This document shows positions 14,837-27,592 of a DNA stretch of 64,000 bases, piece after piece (the stretch's first letter is position 1; the number at the start of each line of letters is the position of its first letter). Source of the DNA: Pavona decussata (Eukaryota). A program made the position numbers and the translations under genes. Under the pieces are notes generated by a model. It had not been told where the DNA came from. It ran no database searches and worked only from the letters and a program-made list of their open reading frames with translations. The stretch lies in NCBI GenBank assembly GCA_977016875.1, contig CDRNST010000070.1:1550001-1614000 (forward strand), written 5' to 3'.

Positions 14837-17800
14837 ATGTCTTGGACCTTCGATGTGTCGTCCTTAAACATTTTCCTGAAATGTTATGTCATGACGACCT
14901 TTGTCCAAGGGATGCTGCACCCAAGAGAGTCCGAAACTCGACAGCTGAAATCTTTGGACGGAATGTGGGATTTCCGGGCAGATATTTCGTCATCCGGGTT
15001 TGAAGAGATGTGGTACTCTATGCCCTTGGCGCAGGTAAGTGATCTGTTTGGTTTAAGAAAATTTTCTCGCTTTGGCTTCTTCGGACATTTCAGATGTTTA
15101 TCTTGGTGTTTCAATAATCCTGTGTCAACTTTAAAATACTGATGGATTGGATTAGAAAACGAAAGTCGATTGCACTCGAAAAATCAGGGTAATTGGCAGA
15201 TTGTTTACAAATTTTATTAAAAGTAGTGTTTTGTTTTACTACCTAGGCTAGCTGTTTCTAATGGGCCGTTTCGTTATTTGATCGACTCTACCATTGATAC
15301 AGAAAATCTGGGACTGAAAAATGTTGCGCTGAAAGCCTAGTATGCTGTGTGGAATGCCGAAAATCTCTATAATTCAGCCTCCCTCTCTAGCAAATTAAAG
15401 CCCCTGTTTGGAGGTCAGGTTTTTAATAAGCCGTCCTACCTCCACTTTGGCTTCCATGTTAGAAAACACAAAAGAGATATTTTTAAAAAAGTCCAGGCGT
15501 ACAAATGATCAAAATATCAGTCAGATTGTCTATCGGAAACGTTCGGGTCAAGAATATACACTGACGTATTATATTGTGCCGAGGTAAGAATGATCTTCTG
15601 ATACACGATCCATTACCGCTTGGTTTCAGAGAGCTGTGAAGAAACATTTTGGAAACGCTACTTCAACTTTTGATCAAAACTTATAATTTCAAATAGCCCC
15701 CTCTCTAAAAAGCCTACCCTTCCCTTCACTCCTCGGAAAAAAGCCCCTGGGAGCATATAAATAGAGCTTACAGCTGAGGTTCCAGCTGACTGGTGGACCG
15801 GGGGATATACGATTTTAATATTTGCAGGCCGAGTCTTCACACATGAAAAAAATTTCGTCATTACTGTGCAGTTAGCAGAACTGGGTTGACTTCCGGCACT
15901 TCTTAGTTGCTATTTCAGACAAACCAAAAAATTTTATATCTGGCACGTACATGCAATGTACATTGCAAACGTACAAACATACTACAGTAGAGTCGGGCAA
16001 AATAATGGAAGGCACGACAAATTATTGTATATAGCGTCAATACTCTATCGATGGTACTGGATGGAATAAAAATGTATTTTGGAGTTGCAATGCTGTGAAT
16101 AACTTATTTCAGAGATATACTGTTGATTTATCGAAAATTCCATCAGCTTGGCTATATTCTTCTGAAAAAACTGAGTGCGAAAATCACTCGGTCAGTAAGT
16201 TGATATCGATTTAAATTGAGTCGTAGTACGTCACTTATTTCCAGGGAGCCATTATCGAGCTAGCGTTCAATGAAAATAATGAAGTTTATTTATACTTTTT
16301 TACTGTCAGCCATGGACAATGAGAATCCACTTAGAAAGAGTAGAAGTAGTAGTAGTCTTTTATTTCCACGATTTCCTTTGTTGACCTAGTCAGGCACGAC
16401 TAGTCAGTAATCAGAATTCGTGACTGCTCATTTCCATCCACGAAAGCAGGTGATGTCCGATTGTACAATAACCTTTTTTCCACTCACGCATTGAGTCGTC
16501 TTTTCCATGTTTTTTCTCACGTTCTGTAAGGGGATTATTGACGCCGGTATGGATAATGTAGAAGACATGTCTGGCAAAGTTTCAAGCCGTTTTTACAAAT
16601 TACGTCAATGAGTGGGCCAGACTCATTGACCCTCTTGACTCCCATTTCTTGCCGCGAGCTCTCACCAAAATGTAGCGTCATGTGTCTCCGTGCAGACGTT
16701 TTACAAAATAATGTTTATCAGTAGGGGATGTAGTCCTTGGTTTGATTCAGTGTTGTCCGGCCTGTGGTTAGGCTGAATTAACGTGAATGACGTTCGATGT
16801 GGATCAGTCATCTCTCAGTGCATTGCTAAGCGGTTTTGAACCATTTCCGTTACTCATTTATGGACTGTGTGGCTTGAAAAAAGTAAAGAAGATCAGAAGC
16901 TTAAAAGGAATTCGAGATTGAGACGCAATCGTGGAACACAACGTGCCGCCTTTCTACGCCGTATGGCCGGTGGCTGCTTTTGCGCATACGTTCTGCGCAT
17001 CTCAAGATTTTCCAAGAAACTCAGATTTCTTAAAAACTGCGCCTACCGAATTCAAAAGTATTTCTGTGCAGCTTATGACAACGTGTGAAAAGATGATTTT
17101 AGCAAGGGCTATTGAAATCCCAAAAAAAAACTTAGGGGTTACCACGTATTTTTCAGGGATAATTAACCTTCAATTTTTTTAGTAAAACCTTTTAGAATTA
17201 TTGTTGCTCAGTTAATATAATAAATATGTTTGAAAATGTGTGCATGGTTACCCCCAATTTTTGTTTTTGAATTTCTTTTCCCTCATGATCATAGGCTGTG
17301 CAGAAGTACCTTTCCGTCTCCTATCTGAAAACATCACCAGTGTTTTGCAGCCCCTACTGGTCGTGTCTGTCTGAAAATATCTCAGTGTGACCAAAAATAG
17401 AATTTATTCCAATTATTCATCTGGTTGACCCCTTTAAAAGGCTAATAGGTGTTTTACTGAAATTAATCGTTTTATACTAATCACCGATTTGGGGGTGCAT
17501 GGGTCACTCCAACGAATTAAAGGCTAATTTGTCGTCCTATGTCAGTTAAAGCTTTATGAGAACACGTGTTTTCTTATAAGGTTGTTTTCCGTTTGTAGTG
17601 GAGTAGCTCGGACGAATTCGTTTACTTAATTAACGTTTGACGCTTAAAATTAAATAGTTATGGCATAAATATCAGCTTAGTTTGAGAACAATGCGGGCCG
17701 GATTTTCGGCACTGTCATACCGCAAGTGCACGCTCCATAACTGAGTTTATACAGTGTTTCTAGCTCTCGGTATTCGTGGTATCAAGAATTAAGAGGATAA

Positions 17801-20800
17801 GAAAGCCAATTACTGACTTAGTTTATATCCTATCTATTTAGCGTGTACGCACGAATTAGCAACTTAAGGGCATTTAGCACCCTTCCAAATGCCATTAGCA
17901 CCTCATTCCATGTTTAGCGAAGGCTCTTCTCTCGGTTATTTTAAAGAAAATGTGTTGTTTTTTCGGAAGATTGATCAAGTTTTACAGTAAAACAATTATT
18001 CGCTGTTTATGATCAGGTTGTGCTCTATGAAAGTGTGGTGCTCATAATCGAGGTCATTAGAAACTGATCATGGTGGATACCTACTTAGGATTAAAAACGT
18101 GGCATTCAATCTGAGTGATGGTAACAGCTGTGCCGAAGTTCCTGCATTTGAATGGATGGCATTCCAGAAACTGGGAACAAACTCGCTGTAAACATTTCAT
18201 AGCTGAGAATATTGAAAGCGATAGCTGCGTCGACCAGCACTGTGATGTCGTCTACCTTCTGGAACTCTCCTTCATGGTAGAATCCTTGCGATGCACCCAA
18301 AGTTAACAGCTTGCGGCATAGCAAGCATTTACGTGCTTTCTTTCTGTCCTCTTCCACCTCCTGCCAATTTTCTACCTTTGCCTCAACGTTTGCCAAGCTA
18401 ACAGATGCAAAAATAAAAATCAAGTGTTTCATAGTAAGGGGACCTCAATGAGGACAAATCTACGTTCATCACTGGTTTTTCTGCAGTCCTAATTTCTGTC
18501 CTTGAAAGTCGCACGTTTCTGATTTATACTGAAGCCTAAGAAAACAAACCTTACAGCTTCTCGGCGCTCAAGCTCTGCTACATATCCCCTATTTTAGAAA
18601 TAACCATTGCTAAGCGCTGCAAATATTTTGTTGGGTCATCCATAGGTATTAAATAAAATTCACACCACTGTACCACTCAAATGTCTGTATGCTAACATTT
18701 AGAATAATTAACAGCTGTGTTTTACAGTTGCATATATTTAGGTTTTTGTCAGCTTCCATAGAGTACTTGATTTGATTTGCAAAAAGTAAGCTATTTAGCA
18801 CCAAGCCGGCTTGCGTCCAAAAATCCGGCTTGTTTTTAATATGCTAGTTTTGTTTCAATGCAAATGTTCCCAGAATCTCCTGACAGTTAACTGAAAAAAC
18901 AACAACATATGATCAGTGAAAACTTCATGATTTCAGCCCGTAAAACGTGCTTATGTTTTGTATTTGTTTGACGCTGTGTTGGTGGTCGTGTATGTCCAAC
19001 TGCAGGAAGCGAGTTATTACATTTCTGTCATTTCTCGCAGAGTGGAGACATCTTGTCGATGCCAGTTCCATCCAGCTACAATGATATCACAGAAGAGCGT
19101 TGGCTTAGAGACTTCATTGGTTGGGTTTGGTACGAGAAGCTGTTTTATGTGCCTCCTTCTTGGAGAGCAACCTCCAACAGAGTGGTGTTACGGTTTGAGA
19201 GCGTGTTTTATCGGTGCAAAGTGGTAAGCTTAAGCATAAAATACCACCCTTTTAGGGTCATAAAAAAGTATAATACTCCATCACGCAATCCCATTCTTTT
19301 GGCGTATTTTTAATGTTTACTGGTAATTCAATGCCTGATTCTCAAAGCGGGGCCCAAATTTGATACCAAAACTTGAACATGTCCAGGCCAAATCCTTATC
19401 GCTCAGAAGAAAAACTATCCATGGACACCAGGGCGGGATCATTGATTTTTTGTGCGCGTTTTAAATGACGGCTGATGAATGTGTTTGTTGATATTTATCA
19501 CACCAAACTCCAAAAGAAATCCGTCAACCTTTTAAACAATTTACGCTTATTACAAGATGTATTTTATTCAAAAGGTTTACCCTGTATGAGTATCTGAAAT
19601 ATCATAAATTATAAAGCAACTTCTTTTCCTTATTGATTAGTACATACGCTAAGAGGGAATCGGTGATGTGACGGTAAAGGAAAATGACTTTCTTGGTTAG
19701 GAATCGAATCAGTCAACATATAACTGTAGAAAGAAGTGTCAAATAGTCAAGCTAAACGAATATCGCAAATCGCTCCACAGTGGTTAAACAATAAAGAGAT
19801 CTTAGAACACGAGGGAGGAGATCTGCCATTTGAAGTCGATATCTCCAAGGAATTAAAGTCAGCTAGCAGAGACTCGCACAGACTTACAGTCGCTGTGATT
19901 AATACTCTTCCATTCACTCAAAAGGCCGAATTGGACAGAAGGTAAGACCACGTTAACTCTCACTGTGATTCCACTTGATAACATCTTTGCCTCGGTCCAC
20001 ACTAGTGCGGAAATTTTTGAAAACGTTTAAAACCAGGCAGATATCAAATGTTTTCCGTCCACACTAGCTTTTCTGAAACATTTTGAAAACGGAACTCTGC
20101 TGTTCATCGCTGGTTTGGCTCCCCCCAACCTCGTCTCCAGTCGTCCTTTCAAACTGACTTTAGACGATTTTTAAATGTATGTTCTTGATAAGGAACTTAT
20201 GGTTTTATCCATCAGTACTAGGGAATGCCACAAAGCAATTGGTTTATTGAGCAAAAACCAATGGCTTTGCATGTGCATTTTACATATTGGTACGTTTCTT
20301 TCCCGTCCTCTGCAAAACAACAACGTGAAATGATCAAATTCAAGGTTTTGTAGACAACGTGAGCATATGACTGTGAAGTTTTCATTTTTTTTCTTAACTT
20401 GAACACCGTTCTACGAATTCAGTTCCTGGATTAAGTTCGAACGCCTTGTGCGAGTTGGAATAATCGCAAAATAGCTCTTATAATATAAATTCGTATTTTG
20501 ACGTGTTCGTTGGCGCTGTCGTCGTCGCTGTTTTAGTTCTCTAAATATTATGTCAGCTGTTAATTGACTACATTTGTTTTTTGCATTTTGTTCTCAGCTC
20601 AACCTACTGCGATTCATCAAATGATTATTTAACAAAAGTAGACTTCTCAGGAATCCACGGCTCCGTAAAGCTCTACACCACTCCTGAAGTGCATGTAGCT
20701 GACATCACTTACGTTACTTACCATAATTATAACAAAGCCACCATCAAATTTATGACGGAGGTTGAAACAAGCGATAACGGGAACAAAAATGGCATCGTCA

Positions 20801-23800
20801 TGACCTATGAGTTGTTGGACAGGGAGGGAAGGGTTGCTGCTTTTGGGAGTGGGGCAAAGATGTTCAGTGGTGAGATGACAGTGTTTAACCCCACCCTGTG
20901 GTGGCCGATTGGTATGAGCGACACGCCGGGTTATCTTTATACACTAAAGGTAAACTTTAAATCAAGGCGTATACGCATGCTCACTATTCTTGACTCCAGG
21001 CTTTTACTGGAGCCCTAGTTTTTCGAGGCTGTAGCCAATAATGCTGGATAGAGGCCACTGGCCTTGAAAACGTTTGGATTTATTATGTTTTCAACATGCT
21101 AAATTTCATTTTAAGTGTTCTTCACTCTTCTTCTTGTAAAAATGAGACTCTAACAATAGACAAACTTCAGTACTAAAAAAATGGCTGCTGATGGCAGGAG
21201 ATTGTCGTTTCACCACAATACAGTCAAAGCTTGCCGTTTTTTGAGTGACATCTTTTATAAACGGTCGCCTCTCTTAGGCGAAAACTTGTCCGTTTTTCTA
21301 ATTGTCTTGGTCAAATCATGCGCTGATGCTTGATGCTTGCAGTTTAGTTCTCTTGTGCTGAACTCGATGATGATAAAATGTTCTAGTAGCTAGTAGTTCA
21401 AGTCAGGCGTAGAGACGCCATGGAAACGAAACATTGGACAGCGCCGAAATAATGCAACGGACCGGAGGGATAGAACTTGAAATAGCCTGAGGAAATAAGT
21501 AAGAGACGATCATCATCATCATCATTATTACTATCGTTATAATTTTTACTTTTTAATTTCCTCTAACTTTTTTGTAGATTTTAGCGTCATATAAGAACAT
21601 GTATGATGTATATACACTTCCGGTGGGCTTCAGGACCGTCCGCGTGGAGGGTTCCCGATTCCTCATCAATAACGTCCCTTTCTACTTCAAGGGTTTTGGT
21701 AAAATACAGGACAGTGACGTAAGTTTTTTTTCAACTTGTCTGCCCTATTTCTCAACTTGAAGTCTTTATCTCGCACCTTTGCTCAAGAACTGCATGGAAA
21801 AAGCCCCAGTAGACAGAGAACCAAACGTTTGTCAAATTTTTGAAAACAAGTTATTCAAACCCAACTTGACAACGGCTTATGAAAATATCTAACGTTTGTT
21901 TCTTGTTACAATGGCCTTCACGTTTTCAATATAAATAAAGTGATGAATTAACTGCTTTGAAAAATAACCACGTCAACAAACCGGTGAAATCAGCCACACA
22001 CGAAGAGGTAGCCTGGGCGTTTGAGGAAGTGGCGGTAGTAGAACACGTTTTGGTGCATTTATAGCAGAGTTCAAATTATGTTTTCTTTTCGGAAAGAAAG
22101 GTCACAGTCCCCCAAACGGGAATTTCAATAGTGTCTAACTGTTCCCTTACTACAGATTAGAGGACTAGGCTTTGATTACCCCACTCTGATTAGAGACTTC
22201 AATCTGATGAAATGGTTTGGCGCTAATTCCATACGCACAAGTAAACATCCACCTCCCATCGAGCTTCTGGATCTCACTGATAAGCATGGCATCGTGGTTA
22301 TAGACGAGAGTCCGACAGCCGGATCAAAAAAGATATTTTTGTATGTATACATCGAATTGTGACCTTAGTGAAATTATATTTCCGCTGGGTTCTTAACCAA
22401 GCTTAAACTGTCAAACGGGGAAGACGACGGAAGACAAATAAGTTGGCGATTGCTAACGATTACGATCGACCCTCTCAAGCCATGTCTGATTGCCGATTTT
22501 TCTTATGCCTTAGCATGTAACCTTTCAACAGCTTAAAACAGTTTAAAAAAACAGGGGGAAAGTTTAAGAAAAAGATTTTCTAAAGTACTAACCCACACAA
22601 AAGTTTCATGTTGAGAGCTTACTCCCGCTTTATTGCTGCGTCTCAAGCAAGCTGTTTTTCTCCCAGGAGGGGGAANNNNNNNNNNNNNNNNNNNNNNNNN
22701 NNNNNNNNNNNNNNNNNNNNNNNNNNNNNNNNNNNNNNNNNNNNNNNNNNNNNNNNNNNNNNNNNNNNNNNNNNNNNNNNNNNNNNNNNNNNNNNNNNNN
22801 NNNNNNNNNNNNNNNNNNNNNNNNNNNNNNNNNNNNNNNNNNNNNNACGATTACAATGATAATGAGAAATGATAACAAAATTCAAGGCATAAAGGTATGT
22901 GCGTCCCCAACAGGTGTTTTTTTTTTTAACTGTATTGGTCTGAAAATGGCTATCAATTTGAGGTTCAGGTTTGATAATGGCAATCTATTTAGAGTGGTCC
23001 TAGGTCAGAACATTCATGGGTCAATCGACCCTGGAACTAGCTTTCACACGACGCTTAAACGGGGGAATCACTTCACATGCAAATACTTTTTTTGTTTTCT
23101 CATACATTCTTCGCAAGAGCCTCCATTCAAAGCGAGAATACGAATGTGGTCTATTTTGGAAGTGAGTTGTTGAACATATATTTTTTTTTTCTGAAAATAG
23201 GTAAGGGGCTCAAGAGGCGGGCCGCAAACGGCACAGCAAACACTTTGAGGAGTACCCCTTGGGGATATTCTTGTTCCCGACTCTTTCTCTTCCGTTTTCG
23301 TCTTTTTGATTCTCCTCCATGCCAGTTCGTTTGACATGGAATTTCTATTTCTAGGGATTATATATCTGATCACACCGCAAACCGACACCTTGATTTAATG
23401 ACAGAATTGATACAGCGGGACAAGAACCATCCCTCCGTGGTCATGTGGTCTGTAGCTAGCCATCGATCGGATTCACGCAATGAAAACTTTGCGAAACACC
23501 TGAGACGAATGATGGAGTTTACCCGAGAGATGGATATGCAGAGACGCCCTGTAACTTACCTAATTTCATCAGATTACAAGCTGGGGATGGTGGAGGACCC
23601 TGTGGTATGTTTTATCAAGAAGTAATAAAACTAAGAGAGTATGTCCCAAAACTTTCCCTAATCCGGCCTGGAATAGAAAGTATGGGTAATACACTCTGTT
23701 ATCTTGATCGTTTCATGGTCCTAGATGGAACGCCGGATTTCAAAGAACAAAACTGTTTGAGGTCGGTGACGGAGTACGAACTCCATTTTTCCTCTCATAG

Positions 23801-26800
23801 ACAGCCGACCAAGCGCGAGCAATCATGTGTTCCTCTTTCGTCGGATTTTCACCGAGAGAAAGAGTAACAGATTGTGTTTAAACAATTATTACGTCGGGAT
23901 CGAGATGTTTTTGCCGCAAGAACCTTTCTCCAACTGTCTGTTGTTTAATTATTGGTGTAGAATATATGGCTACAAGTAGAAGTATCGCGATTCCCCTATA
24001 GTTCTGTCTTACGCTAGAGACGTCAATATCACGCGGTATTGCCGTCTCACTTTTGCCGTCTGTGATTGGTTCCAAAAGTGTAATTGAACATTGCGACACT
24101 GAGCTGGGTTACTCACGTATGCATCAAAATCGAATACGGAATATATTTTCTCCCAACTAACCGTCAATATAATGCGGTATTGCCGACTCAAAATCGCAAT
24201 TAGTTTATAATATTGCTGAAGAACAACCTGGTAGCCAGTCATCATTGATCTAAAATTTGGTGTCAGTTTCAGAGGGTGTTTCTTTCCTCCATCGTGATCT
24301 TGCTCTACCTTCACCTTGCCTCTTTTCACCCAGATATTAAATAATGTAGATTAAGATGTGTAAATGTAGATATGTAGGTGATGTAGTTGTAGATATGGAT
24401 GTGAATGTAAATGTAAAGGGGTAATAGTGTTCAGTGAACTCTCGGGGAGGAATATTAGAATAATACTTCCCGTTAATTCATACTAACTGTAAGCGCCGGC
24501 AGCGTTGCCAGGTGTGGCACCAGTACTTTATTTACCTTCATACATACCTTAACTTTTTTTCACTCGTATTGGAGAGTAGCTGAAAGCTCACTTCTTCAAG
24601 TTGAATTAAAAAGAAATACATATACAAAACCAACAAAAAAGGAATATAAATAAAATTTGGAATAGAATGCGAGAGATCTAAATACAAGAATACTTAATTC
24701 ATTACCTTAACTATTAGGATTAAGTATGTGTTAAACGTGGGCTTGCCTCCTCCTCCTATTAAGTCTGACATTACACAAAAAAGTTAATACCTGAAAACTA
24801 ATTTTTTTTTTTTTCACAGCTTAAATTCTGCGATGTTATTTCCTTTAGTCGTCACTATGGATGGTACTGGCACCCAGGCAAACCTGACCTAATAGCCAAG
24901 TCGTTAGAGGAGGATCTGCGTGGCTTACATAGAGTGTTTGGTAAACCAGTACTTATGGCTGAGTATGGCACCAGCGCTGTTAGCGGAAAACATAAGGTGA
25001 CCAAGACTAAGACAGTTAAATAGTACAGTCGACCCCATTTGGACCACCGTAAACTGTGTTACCGCCTCTTATCTTCGTCCAGAAAAAAAACCTCATACCG
25101 TCATTTTCTTATATGAAGCCGGGGTTTCATTGTACAATTGAACCTCGATATAAGGAAACCTCTCTTGGGTGGATCCCAGCCACATACAAAACTTCTAAAT
25201 CGTATACCATTAGCGAATGCCATAGTTCAGTATACTAAAGAGGGTTTTGACTATTGTAATAAGACAGTTCAAACTTTGGATGAAATCCTGAACGGTTCAA
25301 GCGTTCGATTTTTTCAAAAGAAACTAACAAACCTCTCAGTGTAAAAACTAGTACTAGTTCTGTGTTTCTGTTTCTGTCCCACTGATCTTTCCAAACGAAA
25401 TGTTAGGTATTTGTCTGGTTTCGACCATGGGAGCATTTGTTAGTGATCATAAATTAAAACGCTTAGATTAAGTTGACTTTCAATTGCAACGGATTTTGTT
25501 GCAAATCACATTGAAAATCTACGCCTGTTTTAAACATATGACTTATCAGGTCCAAACCGTTGGATTCTTGAAATGCTAACTGTAACAGTCTAGATAAGCA
25601 CCAAGCCTTATCACTTACTGACCTTTATCGATTGGATTAGTATAGCGATTTCGTTTCAGCTAAAGTTTTTCTCTATTTATTCCTTACTACAGCAACCATC
25701 GTTGATTTACTCAGAAGAATATCAGGTAAAGCAGTTCCTTTAAAACTTTGCATTTTTGACTTATTTGTTTATAACAGTGGTGTTGCCATTTGTTTGATTA
25801 TCCTGCTGGGAGGGTAGGACCTTATCTGCGAATTTCCGTTGTGCCACCATTATCATCTTTTCGTTCTTTCAGTTTTACTTCGTTATCATTTTCATCTTCA
25901 CCCTCCCCCATCTTCTTCCCCGTCTTTCTCATCCTTCTCGTCATCTTCATCGTCTGTTCATAGTTATCGTCGTCTTCCTCGTCGTCGTCAGCAGCAGCAT
26001 CTTCATCGTCACCATCTCTCCTAAGATGGCGCCCTGTAACGCACATGCCATATGCACTGTCTCCATAGGATGCTCATTCTACCCCCATGAGATTAGCTAC
26101 ACGAAGAATATGTGATTAAAAAGTGAGCAATCAATCAAGGTGGTGAATAAGAAAAAAAGGAGTTGTAAAACATCACACGTGCATGTTAACCATAAGGTTA
26201 TACATAAAGAAAAGTGTCATGGTAGAACTGTGAAGGACATTAATTAACCTGAGTTTATTTTTAATGCTTCGATTCTTAGTTTAGATTATTATGTTACCAA
26301 TTCTTTTTATCTCACGTTTAATTTTAATATGTCTGTGCTATTAATATTACCAAATATATAGACAATATGTATAGTCTTTTAATTAACATATGGTTTTTAT
26401 TGATTATGATTTCAGCCTTTAACTGTTATATAGGATAATATATACATGTATAGGGAATATTTATTTTTAACAGCTACACATGGATTTATACCAGCGTTTA
26501 CTTTGTATTCGCTGATCCATTTTGTAGGATAGAGTCATTCATTTAATTTTGAAAACTTTTTACAGGTAGATACGATGAAGAGATACTTTCCTGTGTTTGA
26601 CCAACTCAGAAAAGAGTTTTTAGCAGGAGAAATGATCTGGACTTTTGCAGATTATAATGTTCTAGAACGTACGTATTATAACATGACGATTTATCACTAA
26701 TCAGTCACTCGAGTTTTACAGCAGGGAAGATCACGAGTTAACAGAGAACTTAAACTGCGCTAGAGTCCTTGTACCATCAACTAATCACCTGGCTCATATC

Positions 26801-27592
26801 TGAGATATAGAGGTTCATCTTCAGAACAGACTTTCTCTATTAACAGTTCCTAAAAATCGTTAAACAGAGCATTTCGCGGCATAAGGGATGCCACTCTCTT
26901 TGTTTCACTTCCTTTGAAGCACGAAATGCAAATTACACGTATTCTAGTGATGACAAACTGTTAAATCAAATATTCCGTTTACGTTTACGTCTTTCAATTT
27001 TCCAGATTAAAAAAAAACTGAATATTACCTCAACAAAAGAAAAAAGAAGTTTCGAACTTTCTTTTGAAACTGAAACAATTTTCGAACTTCGTTTCGAAAA
27101 CGAAACAAACTTTTTATAGTTGCATGACGGTCTGTCAGTTGTTTACACTTACTGGTTGATTAACAAGTAAAGGTGAGGGTGGAAAGGCCCACGCATGCCA
27201 AGAACTTTTGTGTTCACAAATTAAACATACAAGACAGAATACTGATCAAATACGAAACAGCTTCAAATTTTTTGCACGTTATTTTCCCTTCAGCTAACGA
27301 ACTCATGTCAGCTAACACCAAGGGTCTGTTAACTCGTCAAAGGCAACCAAAGGCTTCAGCGCATGCTCTCCGGCAGAGATACCAGCACTTGGCCATGGAC
27401 GCGCATCCACGATTCACTGGTGACGAGTTGCTGGACATCCTGATAAGATTTAAGCCTCACCATGGTAACGAGTACCCCATCACTTTTAAACATCATCGGT
27501 TGCCTGCTTTGATACGAGAGGAAAGAGTTAATACCACTATACGGAAACGCTCCGCCGTAGACGATACAACCGCATTCTACGGAGCTAATTAG
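14837..27592 (+). CDS. GUSB: Beta-glucuronidase-like protein (GH2, GUSB family), about 693 aa, divergent paralog with altered catalytic residues
   Basis: Eleven GT-AG, phase-consistent exons: 14837-15034, 19041-19223, 19781-19941, 20598-20949, 21578-21718, 22156-22340, 23355-23604, 24820-24996, 25693-25725, 26566-26668 and 27294-27592. Motifs collinear with GUSB: [101 protein letters not shown]. No stops or frameshifts in the joined model. AATAAA at ~28021. This is a GUSB-like paralog rather than a confirmed ortholog. Confidence 0.93.
22676..22846. other. Assembly gap (N run) in GUSB-like intron 6
   Basis: 171 N. The flanking exon phases are compatible without a missing exon. Confidence 1.
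25839..26015. repeat. Low-complexity (TCA/TCG/TCT)n tract
   Basis: Degenerate trinucleotide run in GUSB-like intron 9; it explains the spurious acidic and Ser-rich ORFs in the track. Confidence 0.8.

Follow-up and report, generated by a model that had tools for sequence, protein, structure and literature searches.

A third, divergent beta-glucuronidase paralog of stony corals with a conserved, remodelled active site

Is a beta-glucuronidase gene in which the acid/base glutamate (Glu) is replaced by histidine (His) and the nucleophile Glu is kept a decaying copy, or a gene put to a new use? This question is raised by a gene of the coral Pavona decussata, located on the plus strand at positions 14837-27592 of a stretch of 64,000 nucleotides (assembly GCA_977016875.1, contig CDRNST010000070.1, positions 1,550,001 to 1,614,000 of the forward strand), which is called the window here and gives the numbering used below. 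The gene encodes an intact member of the beta-glucuronidase (GUSB) group of glycoside hydrolase family 2 (GH2) in 11 exons and about 693 codons. A preliminary description, made from the sequence letters, had taken it for a case of neofunctionalisation rather than decay, and this view is borne out by spliced RNA, orthologs in other corals, a ratio of nonsynonymous to synonymous substitution rates (dN/dS) of about 0.1 and the presence of canonical copies in the same genome. We conclude that the gene is a real, expressed and anciently conserved third GUSB paralog, which has been repurposed and is not a dying gene. Its orthologs form a clade limited to stony corals in current data, as judged from annotated database proteomes, in which corallimorpharians and other groups may be missing.

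Active site and domain structure

Searches with the window gene were done exon by exon, and natural database orthologs stood in for the full-length protein. The acid/base motif of GUSB, WSVANEP, reads W-S-V-A-S-H-R in the window, and its S-H was aligned by HMMER to N-E of the human (1BHG/3HN3), Clostridium perfringens and Dictyoglomus beta-glucuronidase structures. In comparison with 100 canonical metazoan GUSBs, KIQD is found for KHED, RTSKHP for RTSHYP and SRHYGWY for N(S/R)YYxWY, and the Arg before N-x-K is lost; NTKG, GWY and IW are retained, as is the nucleophile Glu. All of these had been read correctly in the preliminary description. Its further reading of FDFFNYAG as LTKVDFSG stands as a changed motif, but the accompanying claim that the Asp is lost is doubtful and depends on the alignment, because all orthologs have (V/L)-D-F-(A/S)-G and MAFFT pairs this Asp with the canonical Asp (Asp207) beside a 3-residue deletion.

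Glu451, Glu540 and Tyr504 are indispensable to catalysis by human GUSB, whose lysosomal targeting has been linked to residues 179-201 together with Lys197 (PMC3834196). Two of these three catalytic residues are replaced in the coral protein, and so is the equivalent of the lysosomal-targeting loop. Under a published seven-residue rubric for this enzyme group, the two Glu, the N and Y motifs and NxKG must all be present (PMC12660308). Two of its elements are found in the window: the nucleophile Glu (human Glu540), in a motif M-A-E-Y-G that is invariant in the clade, and N-x-K-G, which is N-T-K-G in the window, with a Lys that is invariant and an Asn that is changed to Lys in Montipora. The remaining elements are altered. 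The acid/base Glu (human Glu451, E. coli Glu413) is His, the preceding Asn (human Asn450) is Ser in the window and S, N or H across the clade, and in the Tyr motif (Tyr504 and Tyr508) every clade member has His for Tyr504, while Tyr508 is retained in the window and is changed to Asn in Oculina and to His in the ortholog contig L024. Fold and sequence place the protein in GH2 and in the GUSB subfamily; the residue rubric does not admit it as a beta-glucuronidase proper. It is a conserved and expressed GH2 protein that has lost the catalytic Tyr, the acid/base Glu and the Asn paired with this Glu, and that retains the nucleophile Glu and N-x-K-G.

All three GH2 Pfam domains (PF02837, PF00703 and PF02836) were detected in the window exons. 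The PF02836 matches score 58 and 51 bits, PF00703 matches exon 4 with an E-value of 2.4e-5 (25.5 bits; cut-off 23), and the PF02837 match of exon 2, an exon with 80-87% identity in orthologs, is weak. In the Stylophora ortholog (P0157), PF02836 and PF02837 are found at 6e-59 and 2e-18, respectively. It is this natural ortholog, and not the window protein itself, that was modelled with AlphaFold2 from an alignment of 28 rows. The model has a mean predicted local distance difference test score (pLDDT) of 74.7 and a predicted template modelling score (pTM) of 0.78, with all three domains confident, and its top match in the PDB by Foldseek is human GUSB (3hn3; E-value 1.5e-65), with a template modelling score of 0.77 when normalised by query and 0.87 by target. 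A comparison of a model with the human enzyme, proposed in the preliminary description, thus gave human GUSB as the best match. The loop that is replaced in the clade (residues 170-195) has a pLDDT below 50, and the C-terminal tail, which is predicted as two helices, is also of low confidence.

A separate canonical GUSB in the same genome was a further point to be checked, and two were found. A Pfam search for the GH2 barrel in the 602-Mb assembly gave three loci only, i.e., the window gene and two genes on another contig (C42). Exon-by-exon tBLASTn revealed KHEDAD, RTSHYPYA, WSVANEP, NRYYAWY, (A/S)EYG, IWNFADF and GN(R/K)KG in both C42 genes; YFDFFNYAG is complete in one copy, and the alignment to the other begins at NYAG. 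The window gene is, by sequence comparison, the third and divergent GUSB copy, and the housekeeping function is covered by the two canonical genes. The two canonical genes (loci L013-L016) are arranged head to head about 3.5 kb apart, at about 920.9-931.7 kb on the minus strand and 935.1-947.8 kb on the plus strand. Only the minus-strand copy has the C-terminal motif T-G-D-E-L-L-D-x-L-x-R-F, which is common to sea-anemone GUSB and the divergent clade.

Transcription, conservation and origin

Exon labels used here skip a microexon of 33 nt, so that the last exon is exon 10 by label and the 11th exon by count. The RNA evidence consists of contigs of two same-species runs (X1 and X2) from one sample. 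These contigs contain joints of the GT..AG type with zero mismatches at 21718 to 22156, 22340 to 23355, 23604 to 24820, 24996 to 25693, 25725 to 26566 and 26668 to 27294; six junctions are therefore supported by RNA, and it was these joints that revealed the microexon. A single RNA contig of 1425 nt spans exon 7 to the last exon and includes exon 7 (23355-23603) with 0 mismatches. The first four junctions were assigned because their splice sites fit the consensus and NCBI ortholog models have identical residues there. No stop codon or frameshift was found in the 11 exons by examination of stop-to-stop frames and splice consensus, and the intact gene of 11 exons and its transcription, the former claimed and the latter put forward for checking in the preliminary description, are both confirmed. 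The RNA joints and contigs show that the run of N in the window is intronic, that the reading frame is continuous, that the gene is transcribed and spliced, and that the S-H codons are present in RNA.

A hidden exon or a frame break within the N run was also considered. It is ruled out by the joint 22340 to 23355, which skips the N run in both X1 and X2 and preserves the frame, and by the continuous protein alignment.

Orthologs were collected by an exhaustive search of representative proteins and a second word search. Full-length or partial orthologs from NCBI and other database entries, which carry the name "beta-glucuronidase(-like)", belong to Stylophora pistillata, Oculina patagonica, Montipora foliosa, M. 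capricornis, Acropora cervicornis, A. millepora, A. palmata and A. muricata, a list that we take to include both major lineages of stony corals. Past the orthologs, identity falls from 72% to 48%, the latter being the level at which the canonical GUSBs of animals, corals and anemones among them, are found. When exon 7 was used in a word search, eight open reading frames of exon size and 61-81% identity were recovered, each with His at the acid/base position. On the ortholog contigs L017, L018/L019, L020, L021 and L024 the gene is complete, with its microexon and fused exon 7, and none of the aligned exons contains a stop. In four other coral assemblies the frame is open in each of the 11 exons, stops and frameshifts are absent across five species, and orthologs are intact in at least nine coral taxa. 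In two coral metatranscriptome runs, an unspliced copy of about 95% identity, from a near relative, has unchanged S-H codons and Gln as the next residue.

Of the S-H pair pointed out in the preliminary description, the His holds in 15 of 15 distinct orthologous sequences and the Ser does not, the residue preceding the His being S, N or H. Also fixed in the clade are the replacement of Tyr504 and of Tyr386 by His, K(I/R)QD for KHED, Thr after the conserved Trp, and the loss of Arg600, which precedes N-x-K. No variation is seen in the nucleophile Glu or in the Lys of N-x-K, and the His385 position is variable. Among 167 columns that are at least 97% invariant in the 100 canonical metazoan GUSBs, 27 differ from the canonical residue in each of the seven clade members used for this count; most of them are fixed to a new residue, and about half are in active-site motifs. 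This supports, qualitatively, the proposal that changes would be concentrated in the pocket of a conserved scaffold.

Purifying selection was examined by the Nei-Gojobori method for the window gene and four genomic orthologs. Pairwise dN/dS is 0.07-0.14 in all ten pairs at dS of 0.7-2.6, a value of about 0.1 and not near 1. Counts were pooled from per-exon codon alignments with no joined sequence; one intronic codon just before exon 3 was included and the first six codons of exon 5 were left out, with negligible effect. The ratio of the proportions of nonsynonymous and synonymous differences (pN/pS) is at most 0.29 in every exon, and is 0.15 in exon 8 and 0.09 in exon 9. At two of the new His positions (Tyr386 and Tyr504), the codons vary synonymously between CAT and CAC.

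These data bear on one alternative in particular: the gene could be a private duplicate in decay or an unprocessed pseudogene, or its S-H codons could be an error of base calling or assembly. The loss of catalytic residues and an assembly gap within the gene span would fit such an explanation, which is nevertheless excluded by the absence of disablements, spliced mRNA identical at S-H, the intronic position of the gap, the same His in at least nine coral taxa and the dN/dS of about 0.1, and we give it a negligible probability.

In a maximum-likelihood tree, the clade has a support of 100/100, a stem of 1.06 substitutions per site and internal branches of at most 0.17, and its history as read from these lengths is a burst of change followed by constraint. 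Information on the order of events is provided by a GUSB gene at L023:4584-12250, on a 13-kb contig with 2x coverage (ENA ERZ25766962). This gene has the tail of the clade (a segment of 15 residues) and keeps NEP, KHED, RTSHYPY, NRYYGWY, TEYG and NRKG, together with the intron that splits exon 7. With the clade it shares the insertion Q-R-R-P-V-T and the signatures C-D-V-I-S-F-N-R, S-V-L-Y-T-E-E-Y-Q and Q-P-K-A-S-A-H; its identity is 51-54% to the clade and 50-56% to canonical GUSBs. It is likely, from these similarities, a sister or ancestral-type form. Since the tail and clade signatures are combined with a canonical pocket in L023, remodelling of the pocket may be placed after the duplication, and the suggested order is duplication and gain of the tail first, and then pocket remodelling and loss of the intron. 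The hexacorallian (anemone and coral) "A-type" GUSB shares T-G-D-E-L-L-D with the clade; an origin of the clade from this type is neither supported nor rejected by the approximately unbiased test (p = 0.087), and midpoint rooting is uninformative for the long branch of the clade.

The tail belongs to no Pfam family and is present once in this genome, and four ortholog clusters of stony corals are the only full-length database proteins in which it was found. The tail is the most conserved part outside the core, and its prediction as a long helix is one of the points that would suit a non-catalytic subunit or partner of the canonical GUSB tetramer, or of another protein bound via the tail, which would regulate activity, stability or location. 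GUSB is a homotetramer, and 140 of the 167 near-invariant canonical columns are not replaced in every clade member, which would also suit this role. A purely structural partner role, however, leaves the conserved remodelling of the pocket unexplained. We consider the subunit or partner reading quite improbable as the main explanation; a role of this kind is possible and would be compatible with the other readings.

Several sequences encountered in these searches deserve separate mention. Two identical copies of exon 9 lie 330 bp apart on L020 (14732-14833 and 15063-15164), and an extra fragment of exon 6 lies upstream of exon 5 on L018 (7312-7365); these are local duplications or assembly artefacts in metagenome assemblies. 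The Acropora cervicornis model (P0155, KAK2574053) omits the 11-residue microexon, unlike the RNA-supported structure, and an older Stylophora model (P0273, PFX32897, 764 aa) continues into unrelated sequence past the tail. One hit, P0115, looks like the product of a primate GUSB pseudogene and was set aside. P0065 (601 aa), found in the representative search, is an unrelated, probably microbial GH2 glucuronidase-like protein with A-W-S-V-A-H-H at the N-E position, which is also without the nucleophile Glu and the N-x-K motif and appears from its residues to be an independent pseudo-glucuronidase. A second GUSB paralog of the crinoid Antedon mediterranea (P0183) keeps NEP, has Val for Asn after the conserved Trp, and has lost the Arg before N-x-K, reading G-N-T-K-G; as far as its motifs tell, it is a partial and independent remodelling of the same pocket positions.

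Features of the gene region

The features of the gene are listed in Table 1. Exon 7 is a fusion of two exons, and the intron that canonical copies and L023 keep there has been lost precisely in the clade. The end of exon 3 encodes the replaced loop that corresponds to the lysosomal-targeting loop of human GUSB and is variable among orthologs. The reading of exon 5 as ILASYK... agrees with ortholog models. Rfam and tRNA scans of the gene region gave no matches.

Table 1. Positions and contents of the features of the divergent GUSB gene (window numbering; a slash marks a splice site)
Feature	Position	Strand	Content and evidence
Exon 1	14837-15034	+	First ATG of the open frame; donor CAG/GTAAGT; present in L017, L020 and L021
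Exon 1, content			Start codon, hydrophobic signal-peptide-like N-terminus and start of jelly roll; junction residues agree with NCBI ortholog models
Exon 2	19041-19223	+	GH2 N-terminal sugar-binding domain; acceptor CAG/AGT, donor GTG/GTAAGC
Exon 3	19781-19941	+	Acceptor CAG at 19778-19780, donor AG/GTAAGA
Exon 4	20598-20949	+	(V)DF(S)G motif for FDFFNYAG; Ig-like GH2 domain; acceptor CTCAG/C, donor AAG/GTAAAC
Exon 5	21578-21718	+	Start of TIM barrel, K-I-Q-D for K-H-E-D; acceptor TAG at 21575-21577
Exon 6	22156-22340	+	R-T-S-K-H-P-P-P for R-T-S-H-Y-P-Y; PF02836, E-value 1e-15
His at Tyr386 position	22246-22248	+	CAT, in exon 6; codon varies between CAT and CAC among species
Assembly gap (N run)	22676-22846		Inside intron 6; protein alignment continuous across the gap
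Exon 7	23355-23604	+	Acid/base motif W-S-V-A-S-H-R; S-H is AGC CAT at 23458-23463
Exon 8	24820-24996	+	S-R-H-Y-G-W-Y and nucleophile motif M-A-E-Y-G; RNA joints on both sides
His at Tyr504 position	24853-24855	+	CAC, in exon 8
Nucleophile Glu	24961-24963	+	GAG, in exon 8, M-A-E-Y-G
Microexon, 33 nt	25693-25725	+	Encodes 11 residues; flanks CAG/ and /GTAAAG; in all orthologous loci
Exon 9	26566-26668	+	Includes a 10-residue motif; Trp587 equivalent kept, next Asn changed to Thr; RNA joints
Exon 10 (11th exon)	27294-27592	+	A-N-T-K-G and clade-specific C-terminal tail; stop TAA at 27590-27592
N-x-K motif	27314-27322	+	Kept in A-N-T-K-G; Arg600 equivalent is Leu
Invariant tail segment	27497-27553	+	19 residues, in exon 10

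Two observations concern the variation and the introns of this region. In exon 6, X2 and a metatranscriptome share three differences from the window, at 22248, 22259 and 22272 (one synonymous, one Ile to Asn and one Asp to Glu), which suggests a second allele or haplotype. Within intron 7, at 23980-24215, the depth of contigs in two coral metatranscriptomes is 500-600, compared with 5-30 around it, and many contigs stop there with loose ends and with 5-9 mismatches per 130 nt; this segment looks like a highly repeated or transcribed mobile element.

Possible function of the remodelled protein

In comparison with canonical metazoan GUSB (GH2, EC 3.2.1.31; 3HN3/1BHG), the coral protein has the same jelly roll, Ig-like domain and TIM barrel, the same nucleophile Glu, Trp587, Tyr505 and N-x-K-G, and a largely common exon structure, with an identity of about 47-50% to coral canonical copies; when the ortholog model is aligned structurally with human GUSB, the identity is 37%. 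It differs from canonical GUSB in the His at the acid/base, Tyr504 and Tyr386 positions, in K(I/R)QD, in the lost Arg600 and the variable Asn450 and His385 positions, and in the 3-residue deletion at FDFFNYAG, the replaced targeting loop, the new tail and the loss of one intron. Loss of residues essential for the parent reaction, together with purifying selection and expression, would place the protein among the pseudoenzymes. Candidate roles named in the preliminary description were a uronic-acid-binding lectin or pseudoenzyme, an enzyme for activated or thio-glycosides, and a regulatory subunit of GUSB oligomers. We estimate at about 0.5 the probability that the protein is a non-hydrolytic, or at most very weakly hydrolytic, uronic-acid-binding protein of the secretory or endolysosomal system.

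The history of the gene can be read as follows. The unique basic C-terminal tail was gained following the duplication. The pocket was remodelled, probably later, along one long stem branch, with Glu451, Tyr504 and Tyr386 changed to His and KHED to K(I/R)QD, His385 and Asn450 freed to vary, and Arg600 lost. The nucleophile Glu540, Trp587, Tyr505 and the carboxylate-recognising N-x-K-G have been retained, and strong purifying selection has acted on the protein ever since. The protein would enter the secretory pathway via its N-terminal signal-like segment. The standard hydrolysis of glucuronides by two glutamates with retention would be lost or crippled, and the protein would act as a binder of a ligand bearing uronic acid; it would then be a pseudoenzyme of GH2, much as the chitinase-like lectins are of GH18. 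A new binding chemistry may be provided by the histidines that became fixed, together with the Glu that was kept, and the conserved tail may serve for localisation or partner binding.

Several points weigh against a binding protein of this kind. Invariant histidines instead of arbitrary residues, and a strictly kept nucleophile Glu, would fit a new catalytic centre at least as well as plain loss of catalysis, and His, if protonated at acidic pH, could serve as general acid. That uronic acid is bound is proposed from the retained N-x-K-G alone, and Montipora has Lys for that Asn; Oculina is without the equivalent of Tyr508. The predicted signal peptide, and with it the proposed location, comes from hydrophobicity alone, and in the Stylophora model the pocket loops at residues 344-350, 543-552 and 588-604 have pLDDT below 50.

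The main alternative is that the protein is still an enzyme with a new chemistry, in which the nucleophile Glu would work with His in the acid/base role, perhaps as part of a His-His-Glu centre with a potential for metal binding. It might cleave glycosides that have good leaving groups, carry out transglycosylation, or have another substrate or another type of reaction. The invariance of His at the Glu451 and Tyr504 positions beside the variation of the former catalytic neighbours Asn450 and His385 suggests that His itself has been selected for. The retention of the nucleophile Glu, Trp587 and N-x-K is also in favour, and the exons of the TIM barrel are under purifying selection as strong as elsewhere, as the pN/pS of exons 8 and 9 indicates. 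Precedents for altered chemistry exist in myrosinases, which are without the acid/base Glu, and in GH3 NagZ, which has an Asp-His dyad. On the other hand, at least five residues needed for canonical catalysis, including the essential Tyr504, have changed together, and the literature searched contained no example of a His acid/base in GH2. We regard an enzyme of this sort as possible but somewhat unlikely. A more specific form, in which the barrel has been turned into a new catalytic or metal-binding centre of two invariant His and the nucleophile Glu, with the carboxylate of the uronic acid held via N-x-K, is a doubtful proposition on present sequences. If it were true, the chemistry would be new to GH2, e.g., His-mediated or metal-assisted cleavage, transfer or elimination on acidic polysaccharides, and such substrates would be relevant to coral mucus, the skeletal organic matrix and symbiont recognition.

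For the proposed uronic-acid-binding protein, the closest comparison is with the chitinase-like lectins, which are pseudoenzymes of GH18, e.g., YKL-40 and Ym1. Like them, the coral protein is a glycosidase paralog that has lost the catalytic acid, is under purifying selection and coexists with active paralogs. It differs from them in family and fold clan, in that its nucleophile is kept and in that an invariant His is found rather than Leu or Gln, and its ligand binding is putative. A second comparison is with myrosinases, which are GH1 thioglucosidases without the acid/base Glu, and Klotho, whose GH1 repeats are each without one catalytic Glu. These, like the coral protein, are TIM-barrel retaining glycosidases of clan GH-A with a natural replacement of the acid/base Glu and a kept nucleophile, and myrosinase demonstrates that proteins without the acid/base can remain enzymes on activated substrates. 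They differ from the coral protein in being GH1 rather than GH2, and myrosinase uses Gln and ascorbate, whereas the coral protein has His and a second His for the catalytic Tyr.

In the literature searched, no paper was found on a GH2 or GUSB pseudoenzyme, on these coral accessions or on their biochemistry. What is unusual here, as far as the sequences compared can tell, is that His invariably replaces both Glu and Tyr residues, that the conserved tail is unique and that the clade is limited to stony corals in current data.

Because of the database label "beta-glucuronidase(-like)", studies of coral annotation, pathways and expression count these genes as active lysosomal glucuronidases, and to judge from their residues the proteins of the clade are almost certainly not such enzymes. 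Active parents, a canonical sister form and a remodelled but constrained descendant are available together, and they provide a natural experiment on how the pocket of a retaining glycosidase is repurposed. Since the clade is, in current data, confined to skeleton-building corals and is found in both major lineages, it is a candidate for coral-specific biology of acidic glycans, with possible roles in mucus, the skeletal matrix and partner recognition.

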